Below, in pieces: positions 34,831-55,457 of a stretch of DNA of 64,000 bases; the stretch's first letter is position 1, and each line of letters starts with the position of its first letter. The DNA is taken from positions 148,343 to 212,342 of the IMG/VR virus record IMGVR_UViG_3300046170_000378. One strand, written 5' to 3'. The position numbers were made by a program, and so were the translations under genes. The notes under the pieces are model-generated. The model ran no database searches, had not been told where the DNA came from, and was given only the letters and a program-made list of their open reading frames with translations.

Positions 34831-34946
34831 GGGGAGTTAGTCAAATAGGTACGACGCTCCAGCTATAAGGCCGAAAACATCATACTAGTTACGAGGTGTG
34901 ATTAGGCTTGTTGGCAGAAGTAGGGGTTCGAATCCCCTACTCCCCC
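34831..34946 (+). ncRNA. tRNA-like RNA with ~45-nt insertion in the anticodon arm
   Basis: Acceptor GGGGAGT/ACTCCCC, D-arm GTC..GAC, T-arm AGGGG-TTCGAAT-CCCCT, long hairpin replacing the anticodon loop. Confidence 0.75.
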
Positions 34947-37096: not shown

Positions 37097-38236
37097 ATGC
37101 AAAAATTTAGTAACTTTATGCTTCTTAGAGAAGCTGAAACCAAACTTAAAGTTAATGTACCTTCGGATATATTAGACTTATACAATCTTTTCAAAAAGAA
37201 TGGTAAAGAATTGTATGTGGTTGGTGGTGCAGTACGAGATGCATTATTAGGTAAAAAACCAAAAGACTTTGATTTGGCTACTGACGCATTTCCTGCAGAA
37301 GTTATTGATATTGTTACTAAAGGAGGTTATTCAACAACAGGTGAAGTTGGACACCAATTTGGTGTAGTTATTGTAAACGTACCTTCTGATCCAGCGGGTG
37401 TTGAGATTGCTACTTTTAGAGAAGACATTGGAAAGGGTAGAAGACCAGATGCAGTTGAGTATTCTACTATTGATAAAGATGTACTAAGACGAGATTTAAC
37501 AATCAATGCACTGTTCTATGATATGGGCAGACAAGAGGTTGTTGATTTAGTTGGTGGTTTGGATGATATAAAAAATTCAAAGATTAGAACTGTAGGTGTT
37601 GCAGCTGATAGATTCGCTGAAGATCCTTTAAGAAAACTAAGAGCTTTAAGATTTGCTGGTAGAACTGGATCAAACTTAGAAGAAGAAACTGCTAATGCCA
37701 TTTTAACAGATAATAGTTTAGAAGGTATTAGTGCAGAGAGAATTAGAGATGAGTTTAAAAAATCTATAGTTTCTGCTAAGTCCGCTAAGAAGTACTTAGA
37801 GATGGTCTCTGAATTCAACCTGTGGTCTGTTATGTTTCCTACATTAGAGATCAATAAAAAATTCATAGACACCAATACTTGGCTTGTTCAATTGGGTACA
37901 CTGTTTATTGCCAATGAACATAAAAAAGAAATGAACAAACTTACATTTACCAATGATGAGATTGATGCATGTATTTTCTTAAAGAGAATCATGGCGTTCG
38001 ATGTAAATGACGTGTTTGATTTACATAAGCAATTTAAAAACACCAACATGGACAAGAAAGAAGTTCTTGAATTTGCAAAAATACACAAATTAGATATTAA
38101 AACCTTGAAGGCGTTCTTTAAATATAAACCAACTACTAATGGTAAGGATGTAATGAAAGAGTTCGGCATCAAAGGACCAGAAGTTGCAATAAAGATAAAA
38201 CAAATAGAATCAGATAAATTTAAAAAGACTATTTAA
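37097..38236 (+). CDS. cca: CCA-adding enzyme / tRNA nucleotidyltransferase (class II)
   Basis: YVVGGAVRDALLGKKPKDFDLAT, EIATFR, RRDLTINAL, EDPLRKLRALRF; adjacent to tRNAs lacking CCA. Confidence 0.9.
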   Translation: MQKFSNFMLLREAETKLKVNVPSDILDLYNLFKKNGKELYVVGGAVRDALLGKKPKDFDLATDAFPAEVIDIVTKGGYSTTGEVGHQFGVVIVNVPSDPAGVEIATFREDIGKGRRPDAVEYSTIDKDVLRRDLTINALFYDMGRQEVVDLVGGLDDIKNSKIRTVGVAADRFAEDPLRKLRALRFAGRTGSNLEEETANAILTDNSLEGISAERIRDEFKKSIVSAKSAKKYLEMVSEFNLWSVMFPTLEINKKFIDTNTWLVQLGTLFIANEHKKEMNKLTFTNDEIDACIFLKRIMAFDVNDVFDLHKQFKNTNMDKKEVLEFAKIHKLDIKTLKAFFKYKPTTNGKDVMKEFGIKGPEVAIKIKQIESDKFKKTI

Positions 38237-52643: not shown

Positions 52644-52705
52644 TAAATTTTTGAAACAAAAAAGAGTAATCATATATAATTAGTATTAAACAAATAAATT
52701 AAACA

Positions 52706-52882
52706 ATGGAAGAATTATTAAACCAAATGAACGAGATTTTAGCTGACATCCAAGATGACGCAGTAAAATTTGAAGAAAAAGGAAATAAAGCAGCAGGTAC
52801 AAGAGTACGTAAAGCGATGCAAAACATCAAAGCTGTGGCACAAGAAGTAAGAGTTTACGTAAGCGCTAAAAACAACGCGTAA
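52706..52882 (+). CDS. Histone H1-like (Hc1 family) small DNA-binding protein, 58 aa
   Basis: Manually translated, missed by the track: KFEEKGNKAAGTRVRKAMQNIKAVAQEVR. Confidence 0.75.
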   Translation: MEELLNQMNEILADIQDDAVKFEEKGNKAAGTRVRKAMQNIKAVAQEVRVYVSAKNNA

Positions 52883-52929: not shown

Positions 52930-53003
52930 GGGGGATTAGCTCAGCTGGCTAGAGCGCCTGCCTTGCACGCAGGAGGTCATCAGTTCGACTCTGATATTCT
53001 CCA
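52930..53003 (+). tRNA. trnA: tRNA-Ala(UGC)
   Basis: CCTGC-CTTGCAC-GCAGG; G3:U70 pair; no CCA. Confidence 0.93.
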
Positions 53004-53029
53004 CTGAAGACACAGTTCTTTGAAATATT

Positions 53030-53430
53030 GGGAAGGCACATTTGATACTGATCATTGATGATGTGAGTGTATTGCCGAAAAAATCCTGACGGAAAGAGGG
53101 ATTAAGGCACACCAGACACCGAACACGTTTCGGCTTAGTTGCAGAAGTGAGTAACTAAGACTTGGCAAAGTAGATGGTGGTAGATCGAGAAAGATAACAT
53201 AAACTAATCTTTCTAGGAGCATTGCAAGTACCCGAGAGGAAATCTTGCCCAAGTGACCGAATATCCTGTCTTATTAGGGGATAAGGTACAATCAAAGCCG
53301 TTGCGGCGCTACAACGAGATTAACCATCTTGAGTAGAACTTGAAATAATAGTAAAGTTGATTGGTATGCAGTAATCATTACAATAAGTCGATCTTCTAGA
53401 GCTGGTATACTCTAGTACACGATCCTTCCT
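53030..53430 (+). ncRNA. Candidate ~400-nt highly structured noncoding RNA
   Basis: No + strand ORF of 60 aa or more; closing stem GGGAAGG/CCTTCCT; at least 7 internal helices; flanked by tRNAs. Confidence 0.6.
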
Positions 53431-53441
53431 TTTTTTATTAA

Positions 53442-53517
53442 GCGAAAGTAGCTCAGCTGGTAGAGCATGACCTTGCCAAGGTCAGGGTCGCCGGTTCGAA
53501 CCCGGTCTTTCGCTCCA
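53442..53517 (+). tRNA. trnG: tRNA-Gly(GCC)
   Basis: TGACC-TTGCCAA-GGTCA; CCA. Confidence 0.93.
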
Positions 53518-53611
53518 TCAACAAAGAGAAATGTATCCTTACTTCTCTTGAGTTCGAGGACACGCAGCATAAAATTCTAGACAAGCAGAAGTCGTAGGTT
53601 CCCGAACACCT

Positions 53612-53651
53612 AAACCGCCTATCCGATACAGGAAACAGCGGTTTTTTTTTT
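53612..53651 (+). terminator. Terminator after RNA operon
   Basis: AAACCGC...GCGGTTT followed by a long T-run. Confidence 0.7.
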
Positions 53652-53695
53652 GAAACAAACAACCCTTTGTAAATATAATATAAAAGATTTTAGAC

Positions 53696-54692: not shown

Positions 54693-55457
54693 TTGGAAGG
54701 ATACGAAATTAATAGAGTCCAGGAAAATGGACTAAGATTCTATAGAGTAACCAAAGGTGACGAAGAAGTTGCAAAGTTACCATCTGTAACCACTGTCTTA
54801 GGTAATACCAAAGACATGTCTGGTTTAGAGAAGTGGAAAAAAAGAGTTGGTGAAGCAGAAGCCAACCGCATTTCTACATTGTCTATGAATAGAGGTACTA
54901 TTATGCACAGATTAATAGAACTTTATAAAGGAGAGACTTCGGGTGAACCAGAAGAAAGGTTAGCACAACTAAAGGAAATCTCTAAAGAAGACGAAGAAGT
55001 TAATCAATTCAAAGACGAAGAATTAGGAGCTTTCTTTTTACAACAAGCATGGACATTTTTTTACAAATTCTATTATAATCACGATGTGTACTTCGATAGA
55101 ATAAATGAGGTACTAGAAGCAGAAACTTTTTTATGGACCACTAAAGGTGGTGGATGGGCAGGAACAGTAGATAACATATCTGAACTTGTTGATAATAAAA
55201 TTATGATCATTGATTATAAGAATTCTCGTAAGCCTAAACAAGAAAAATGGATTCAAGATTACTTCTTACAGGCTGCAGCTTATTTTATAGCATATTGGGA
55301 TATGTCAGGTAAAAAGGCAGATGGTGCAGAGATTTGGATTGCTAATGAATTAGATAATTTACCACAAACATTTAGCATCACTCAAAGAGATTTGGAGTTC
55401 TATGCAAAGGAGTTTATGAAGCGCAGGAAGACGTTTAAAGAAAAATTCGATATATAA
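54693..55457 (+). CDS. PD-(D/E)XK exonuclease (Cas4-like phage exonuclease family)
   Basis: LPSVTTVL, GTIMH, AGTVD, IIDYKNS, YFLQAAAY. Confidence 0.85.
   Translation: MEGYEINRVQENGLRFYRVTKGDEEVAKLPSVTTVLGNTKDMSGLEKWKKRVGEAEANRISTLSMNRGTIMHRLIELYKGETSGEPEERLAQLKEISKEDEEVNQFKDEELGAFFLQQAWTFFYKFYYNHDVYFDRINEVLEAETFLWTTKGGGWAGTVDNISELVDNKIMIIDYKNSRKPKQEKWIQDYFLQAAAYFIAYWDMSGKKADGAEIWIANELDNLPQTFSITQRDLEFYAKEFMKRRKTFKEKFDI

Follow-up and report, generated by a model that had tools for sequence, protein, structure and literature searches.

A tandem manA-like RNA gene between two tRNA genes of a large marine phage

What occupies the 437-nt gap between two tRNA genes of a large marine phage? The analysed stretch of DNA (64,000 nt, hereafter the window) is a part of the IMG/VR contig 3300046170_000378 (212 kb). 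The gap, at positions 53005-53441 of the window, lies between tRNA-Ala(UGC) (52930-53004) and tRNA-Gly(GCC) (53442-53517), all on the + strand. An initial annotation, made from the sequence alone, placed here (53030-53430) an ornate non-coding RNA candidate of roughly 400 nt with paired ends, a following T-run, nine helices and a G+C content above that of the surroundings. It found no match to GOLLD, ROOL, RNase P or a group I intron, and suggested a possible new family. We confirmed the observation itself: the element is a conserved, non-coding, highly structured RNA. The interpretation was only partly supported, because the RNA is not unrelated to everything known, and two of the nine helices are wrong.

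A conserved, structured RNA

Every string cited in the initial annotation was present in its place, and the T-run follows at 53430-53437. The G+C content of the element is 0.413, compared to 0.33-0.35 in the flanking genes and 0.346 for the window. Folding of the window sequence alone was not convincing, with an MFE z-score of -1.82 and 3 of 100 shuffles folding as well. No Rfam family reached its gathering score, so as a family the RNA is undescribed, and neither GOLLD, ROOL, RNase P, tmRNA nor the group I/II introns gave a hit even at E ≤ 10. ARAGORN found no tmRNA. Some RNase P-like strings were set aside because the Rfam RNase P models gave nothing.

The comparative evidence, which the initial annotation had named as the test of its proposal, is strong. 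We collected about 70 homologous loci from marine viral and metagenome contigs, with 48 distinct full-length sequences; individual loci are denoted below by L numbers. An exact 20-mer found five more viral contigs carrying the whole element. A gapped 3′-end pattern found 61 marine metagenome loci (TARA, ENA and JGI records), all of which carry the element, about 53 of them at full length. Searches downstream of hc1 homologues and with a core pattern added three divergent members free of the bias of that fixed 3′ pattern, L279, L283 and L359. One copy sits on a 5.6-kb contig binned with a Flavobacteriales MAG. The two halves of the RNA never occur apart. In contrast, blastn at E ≤ 0.01 returned no relative of the element among GenBank phages, and the 10-kb neighbourhood matched only through tRNA-Ala. 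Two further gapped patterns gave only chance hits in coding DNA (L199-L213).

In the alignment of 45 distinct homologues, RNAalifold gave 95 consensus pairs, in which 99.7% of cells pair and 33 pairs show changes on both sides. When the 3′ partners were slid by 1-3 columns, only 35-44% paired, with 3-6 such pairs. Individual pairs changed up to nine independent times on a tree while staying paired. For the 5′ domain alone, 20 of 37 pairs are compensated, and 0 of 500 shuffles reached that number. We must also note that the family has a few deep clades, so many single-column covariations are confounded; the argument rests on the helix-level and slid-register controls. An all-against-all column covariation scan was swamped by clade structure and is not usable for tertiary contacts. 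Many invariant G-U pairs fix the transcribed strand as +. The RNA is 78-93% identical in nucleotides to relatives whose flanking genes are 66-87% identical or no longer alignable. There is no coding signal, as gap runs are mostly not multiples of 3, no 3-periodicity was found, and the longest open frame varies from 39 to 99 aa.

Seven of the nine helices are supported, namely GGGAAGG/CCTTCCT, CCGAA/TTCGG, CTTAGTTGC/GTAACTAAG, AGAAAGAT/ATCTTTCT, GCAAG/CTTGC, TATCC/GGATA and CTAGAG/CTCTAG. The proposed long-range helix AGATGGT/ACCATCT is not supported, since its 5′ side varies while the 3′ side is invariant; CACC (53110-53113) with GGTG (53176-53179) covaries instead. CGTTG/CAACG is not supported either, since it gives an A-C mismatch in about 13 of 45 sequences, and the hairpins GCC/GGC and CTAC/GTAG fit instead.

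The element is preceded by a conserved, unpaired A/U-rich leader (53012-53030; GTTCTTTGAAATATT at 53015-53029, consensus GUUCUUURAMAUAUU), a candidate endonuclease processing site or 5′ tail. Conservation starts abruptly at GTTC in all loci, and no covarying partner of the leader was found. As a recurring promoter motif it is not enriched in the window (44 matches against 37 expected), the only exact match being this site. A -10 box read in the leader would put the transcription start inside the covarying closing helix. Pairing of the leader with CAAAG (53291-53295) is not kept in relatives (L216), nor is pairing of the P2 loop with the GAUC at 53421-53424 (L279, L359).

The closing helix P1 is formed by GGGAAGG (53030-53036) and CCTTCCT (53424-53430), with three of six pairs switching between G-C and A-U in 17-20 sequences; L359 has AAUAAAGG/CCUUUAUU. 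The 3′ strand is followed by the U-run (to 53437), which is absent in the L214 clade (UAUGUUAU) and partly pairs with a 5′ A-run in the L249 clade, so it is not a conserved terminator. Hairpin P2 (53037-53065; CACAT/ATGTG plus A53047-T53055) has a covarying stem and a 7-nt apical loop (53048-53054) that carries the palindrome TGATCA. The long-range helix GTGTA/TACAC (53067-53071 with 53416-53420) is a prediction, as its only variation is A-U to G-U in 6 sequences and its 3′ side was fixed by our search pattern. A second long-range helix, AGATCG/CGATCT (53182-53187 with 53389-53394), is invariant in the pattern-selected set but compensated in members found by other routes, as AAAUCG/CGAUUU in L283, AGAUCA/UGAUCU in L279 and AGGUUA/UAACUU in L359. 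The hairpin AGAAAGAT/ATCTTTCT (53188-53214) has a conserved TAAAC loop, and its stem changes to GGAAAA/UUUUCC and GAAAUAG/CUAUUUC in other clades. The hairpin GCAAG/CTTGC (53224-53248) has an inner CC/GG stem and a GNRA loop (GAGA, in others GAAA), and is compensated to GUAGG/CCUAC in L240 and L223. The hairpin CTAGAG/CTCTAG (53396-53415) has a GGTATA loop, with three of six pairs compensated and up to 9 independent changes per pair.

Tandem modules and their probable relation to manA

A permissive Rfam scan gave one notable hit. The manA model (RF01745) aligned over all 192 model positions at 53233-53436, with 28.2 bits and E = 3.4e-5, and the same full-length, same-place match recurred in all 14 relatives tested, at 20.2-32 bits. 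The gathering score is 55.2 bits, and canonical cyanophage manA loci scored 153-191 bits in the same runs. The matched region includes module B (53253-53365), which holds GTGACCGAATA, a hairpin, GGGGATAAGGTAC and a four-way junction in which CAATC/GATTG encloses GCC/GGC, CTAC/GTAG and AACTT/AAGTT. The manA core strands UGACUGAAUAA and UAAGGU, flanking a hairpin and closed by 2-3 outer pairs, have their counterparts in GTGACCGAATA and GATAAGGTAC at 53253-53289, where the outer pair C-G switches to U-A in 15 of 45 sequences. All four junction helices coincide with manA model helices, covary in our family, and are heavily compensated in L283, L279 and L359. The UGACYGAAUA and UAAGGU strands, the AGAAC junction and the GGUA and GGUAUAC motifs are shared as well.

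Nevertheless, several manA features are missing. The manA pseudoknot joins a GGGAG strand just upstream of the UGAC strand to the CUCCC 3′ tail, whereas here the corresponding strand (CCCAA) is not complementary, and the 3′ tail CCTTCC pairs, with covariation, with GGAAGG about 200 nt further upstream. The long 3′ hairpin of manA is also absent. Reciprocal searches were not significant: our model R2 gave 4.5-6.5 bits (E 0.4-1.7) at 2 of 6 canonical manA sites, and R3, built only from B modules, gave no match with E ≤ 1 at the canonical sites in L033, L034, L007 and L011, although both models are narrow, with an effective sequence number of about 1.1. We therefore consider the RNA a distant relative that would work like manA, and not a member. 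We hold this kinship with fairly good confidence.

The 5′ half contains a second, more diverged copy of the same module. In the divergent member L359, the 5′ domain reads UGACCGAA...GGGGAUAAGGUAC, which is 81% identical over 42 nt to its own 3′ module. In the window, module A (53069-53181) holds TTGCCGAA, a hairpin, TTAAGGCAC and a four-way junction CACC/GGTG with three hairpins, one of them GNRA-capped. Both modules are 113 nt long and are followed by GGUA. Model R3 matched module A over the full model at the expected coordinates in 5 of 5 relatives (13.5-24.2 bits, E from 3e-4 to 0.1) and, weakly, in the window at 53071-53181 (12.7 bits, E = 0.07); E-values from our models are rough. In the search of relatives the only chance hits at E ≤ 1 scored 12.3 and 9.6 bits, below all five module A matches, and in the window search they scored 9.6 and 7.9 bits. 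The RNA is thus a tandem duplication of a manA-like module, in which each module has a UGAC/UGCC-GAA strand, a hairpin, a UAAGG strand and a four-way junction with three hairpins, and three long-range helices clamp the two together. The 5′-domain model R1 found nothing in 71 loci of peptidase-related phages or next to manA in 100 canonical loci; a 15.9-bit hit in L128 was the end of hc1 plus a terminator.

Genomic setting and proposed mode of action

The phage is a myovirus with a T4-type capsid protein, terminase, tail sheath, DNA ligase, a CCA-adding enzyme and 12 tRNA genes called by ARAGORN in the window. Its nearest cultured capsids are those of Tenacibaculum phage PTm1 and the Lak phages. 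Together with the Flavobacteriales MAG, this makes a Bacteroidota host likely but unproven. In every locus with upstream sequence, an hc1 gene (here 52706-52882; 58 aa, histone H1-like protein Hc1, PF07432, E = 5.4e-21) lies directly before the RNA on the same strand, at 24-46 nt, or at 107-159 nt when tRNA-Ala or tRNA-Thr is inserted. A sigma-70-like promoter (52651-52680; TTGAAA, 18 nt, TATAAT; 11 of 12 matches) precedes hc1 and is the likely start, by inference, of the transcription unit that holds the RNA, and a near-identical site at 53650-53679 starts the next unit. In relatives, a tRNA or a short hairpin without a U-run always sits 5-11 nt before the conserved leader, which leaves no room for a promoter between hc1 and the RNA. 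In the window, tRNA-Ala ends 10 nt before the leader and has no encoded CCA; in relatives it lies either 5-7 nt upstream or 17 nt to 4 kb downstream of the RNA, always on the same strand.

The downstream neighbour differs between clades. In the window, tRNA-Gly begins about 10 nt after the element as matched by nhmmer (4 nt after the U-run), and a tRNA-Gly lies 10-11 nt downstream in at least 10 loci. Elsewhere we found tRNA-Ala at 17-42 nt, or a small ORF and then tRNA-Ala. In L238, L221 and L229 an intrinsic terminator follows within about 15 nt, with a new promoter right after it in L238 and L221, and in L216 a terminator and then tRNA-Ala follow. The likely terminator of the hc1-tRNA-RNA-tRNA unit in the window is the hairpin ACCGC/GCGGT plus a T10 run (53614-53651), which the terminator scan did not call because its loop exceeds 8 nt; the last 44 nt are conserved in 8 further relatives, those that carry a tRNA-Gly after the RNA.

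We consider it somewhat more likely than not that this is a gene for a stand-alone RNA of about 400 nt (about 437 nt if cut exactly at the tRNA ends) that acts in trans as a self-assembling particle. In this view, the RNA would be transcribed from the promoter in front of hc1 and released by ordinary tRNA end-processing where a tRNA abuts it, by RNase Z after tRNA-Ala and by RNase P before tRNA-Gly, the latter setting its 3′ end. Where a hairpin replaces the tRNA, an endonuclease would probably cut in the A/U-rich leader. Copies would then join through loop-loop contacts, with the palindromic P2 loop and the GNRA loops as candidate interfaces. The analysis establishes the sequence conservation, the secondary structure, the duplication, the synteny and the absence of a regulated downstream gene, whereas the homology to manA (a sub-threshold match plus shared architecture), expression and the processing route, oligomerisation and any role in infection are inferred. 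We hold the claim of an RNA gene with high confidence and the assembly step only tentatively.

The assembly step rests on analogy plus one palindrome-to-palindrome change. A July 2026 preprint (bioRxiv 10.64898/2026.07.01.735769) reported cryo-EM structures of several manA RNAs, which form decamers and a 60-mer built from pentamers held by kissing loops and a GNRA-receptor contact. ROOL and GOLLD, phage RNAs near tRNA islands, form RNA-only, homo-oligomeric nanocages, as cryo-EM shows (Kretsch et al., bioRxiv 10.1101/2024.12.08.627333). Here, the GAUC of the P2 loop, mostly UGAUCA, is invariant in 47 members. The same loop on a different stem is found in a sister RNA of roughly 350 nt that exactly fills the gap between two tRNAs in L358 and L360, the only two members, to which a further viral scan added none. 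In L359 the loop is GGCC, still a palindrome, while the other GAUC sites in L359 change differently; this single palindrome-to-palindrome change has a chance of about 1 in 16. Two loops also stay GNRA while varying in sequence.

It is also possible, though unlikely on present evidence, that the RNA is a covalently fused "dimer" of manA protomers, in which gene duplication joined two cage-forming modules into one chain. Five (or n) chains would then build the kind of closed shell that ten (or 2n) single-module manA RNAs build, and the P2 loop would add a new two-fold interface. Because the RNA would be released from a tRNA transcript, the particle might hold or present the neighbouring phage tRNAs or the Hc1 protein during infection. 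This would make tRNA-island RNA cages a recurrent phage invention in three unrelated folds: GOLLD, ROOL and manA.

Alternative readings and known systems

Among the alternatives, the one that survives best, although doubtful, is a monomeric partner or regulator of the co-transcribed Hc1, either a scaffold or decoy for this basic nucleic-acid-binding protein or a 3′-UTR element controlling hc1 mRNA stability. The constant position of hc1, kept even though tRNA-Ala, the M42 peptidase gene and the downstream genes move, and the lack of room for a promoter speak for it. However, about 70 of 79 other phage hc1 loci lack the RNA, some carrying a YrlA-like RNA or only ORFs there, and it is also missing from the hc1 loci of the huge phages LR756500 and LR745206. 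Canonical manA loci show no hc1, and the sister RNA of L358 and L360 sits between tRNAs, whether or not an hc1 is present there. All RNA-bearing loci belong to one phage clade, so the linkage may be inheritance rather than function.

A cis-acting, riboswitch-like leader is less likely still. Rfam and Weinberg et al. 2010 (PMC2864571) class manA as a cis-regulatory riboswitch candidate, and ligand binding could here stabilise P1 next to the U-run, present in most members, and so control read-through into the downstream tRNA or ORF. In the L249, L253, L232, L224 and L240 clades a small ORF starts 25-35 nt downstream, which would allow a leader function there. On the other hand, there is no conserved downstream gene, a terminator directly after the RNA in some loci leaves nothing to regulate, and a tRNA lies 7 nt upstream in many loci. 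Moreover, the U-run is missing in the L214 clade, P1 closes about 390 nt and is not a terminator hairpin, and no alternative pairing or expression platform was seen. An element that ends a transcription unit or is sandwiched between tRNAs fits a free product, not a leader.

A self-cleaving ribozyme, an intron remnant, or a guide for tRNA processing or modification is very unlikely. The size, the many invariant unpaired nucleotides, the tRNA array and the phage-encoded CCA-adding enzyme would suit it, but no ribozyme, intron or RNase P model matched even at E ≤ 10, the flanking tRNAs are intact and continuous, and no conserved cleavage-site architecture was recognised. A DNA-level element (replication origin, packaging or recombination site) or a conserved spacer, suggested only by four conserved GATC sites within 400 bp of an AT-rich genome, can be all but dismissed, because compensatory changes preserve RNA pairing, invariant G-U pairs would be A-C on the other strand, and the element always has the orientation of the flanking tRNAs and hc1.

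As for known systems, in sister phages that lack this RNA the same slot, after hc1 and before tRNA-Gly, holds sub-threshold matches of 30-42 bits to the YrlA / Y RNA-like RNAs (RF02553), so the locus is a general site for structured RNAs. Our element gives no YrlA signal; YrlA has a tRNA-like domain and binds Rsr (Ro60). The stable RNAs of the phage T4 tRNA gene cluster (species 1 and 2, rnaC/rnaD) are small RNAs with no known function, co-transcribed with the tRNAs and released by host tRNA-processing nucleases, which is the production route we infer here. They are about 140 nt long and are not known to be related in sequence to our RNA.

The manA motif is likewise a marine phage RNA, with a GGUA strand after the junction, a 3′ hairpin with GGUAUAC and a C/U-rich 3′ tail that closes the fold. 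Some canonical manA RNAs also abut same-strand tRNAs (11 of 120 loci, with a 0-nt gap in L019), and a PD-(D/E)XK nuclease homologue lies within a few kb in both kinds of phage. Our RNA is about twice as long as the single manA module of about 190 nt, and carries two modules in one chain, a nested closing helix where manA is drawn with a pseudoknot, extra long-range helices, the P2 hairpin and a conserved leader. Unlike manA, it is never in a 5′ UTR of sugar (mannose/fructose), nucleotide, chaperone or photosynthesis genes, and its host range looks Bacteroidota-like rather than cyanophage or gamma-proteobacterial.

ROOL and GOLLD are large, ornate phage and prophage RNAs with no known function, typically next to or inside tRNA islands, a location our RNA shares. 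GOLLD also has two domains, a conserved 3′ part and a less conserved 5′ part, and tRNAs can lie in its linker. There is no sequence or model similarity to either, our RNA is smaller (about 400 nt against about 580 to more than 800 nt), and its fold is of a different, manA type; the cage-like behaviour of ROOL and GOLLD is what we propose here by analogy. manA has been an orphan riboswitch candidate since 2010, and the present family shows its fold duplicated in tandem, in large marine myoviruses that look Bacteroidota-infecting, with tRNAs or a terminator on its sides. That argues that the native role of the fold is as a free RNA particle rather than a leader. The family offers a natural two-module construct for structural work and an abundant marine target for asking what such RNA assemblies do in infection, and it ties manA to the same genomic niche, phage tRNA islands, as ROOL and GOLLD.

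tRNA-related features and putative transcription signals in the window

Inside the first tRNA array of the window, a stretch at 34831-34946 (+) gave an Rfam tRNA match of 42.5 bits that spanned 116 nt and was not called by ARAGORN; it may represent a tRNA with an insertion or intron. A gene for a tRNA nucleotidyltransferase (CCA-adding enzyme) was located directly after this array, at 37097-38236 (+), and tRNA-Ala at 52930-53004 has no encoded CCA.

tRNA-Gly is followed by a 130-nt non-coding stretch (53518-53651, +), which ends in a hairpin plus a T10 run. Only the last 44 nt are conserved in other relatives, and the first 90 nt are shared only with the near-identical contig L255. We also observed two almost identical promoter-like sites, at 52651-52680 and 53650-53679 (+), with the elements TTGAAACAAA ... 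TATATAAT and 11 of 12 matches to the sigma-70 consensus, each positioned right after a T-run. The same motif follows the terminator of the RNA in L238 and L221, two of the loci that carry it. Such sites are unexpected if the host is a Bacteroidota, whose promoters differ. As to the host, the only hit among 185,579 species-representative genomes was a short contig of 5.6 kb (L357, PKDP01000085.1) binned in a Flavobacteriales MAG, which is probably a phage contig and provides a weak clue.

A sister RNA and the slot after hc1

A sister RNA of about 350 nt exactly fills the gap between two same-strand tRNAs in two further loci, L358 (2574-2922, +) and L360 (700-1052, -). It has a closing helix AUGAAGGAA/UUCCUUCAU, a hairpin with a UGAUCA loop, and one manA-like module (UGACUGAA...GGGGGAUAAAGUAC), and it was scored at 20.6 bits by R3, the covariance model built only from the 3' modules. 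We must note that only two members were found, and that they are 92% identical.

In related phages that lack the RNA described here, the stretch between hc1 and tRNA-Gly gave sub-threshold matches to the Y RNA-like family YrlA (RF02553), with scores of 30-42 bits against a cut-off of 69. These matches were located at L321:1879-1995, L291:1701-1831, L292:1855-1982, L297:1728-1840, and L299:1855-1995. The slot after hc1 therefore seems to be a general site for structured RNAs.

Genomic neighbourhood of canonical manA RNAs

A PD-(D/E)XK nuclease gene, positioned 1.3 kb downstream of the RNA (54693-55457, +), has homologues with 27-37% identity in 23 of 120 cyanophage manA loci (L037, L006, L061, and 20 more canonical manA loci). 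The homologues lie about 1.2-1.5 kb upstream of manA in the three loci that we measured, suggesting an old shared neighbourhood. Moreover, canonical high-scoring manA RNAs (150-190 bits) directly abut same-strand tRNAs in 11 of 120 viral loci, namely L019 (2344-2609, -), L005 (344-627, -), and nine more of L001-L120, and in L019 the gap is 0 nt. This arrangement is hard to reconcile with a purely 5'-UTR role for manA.
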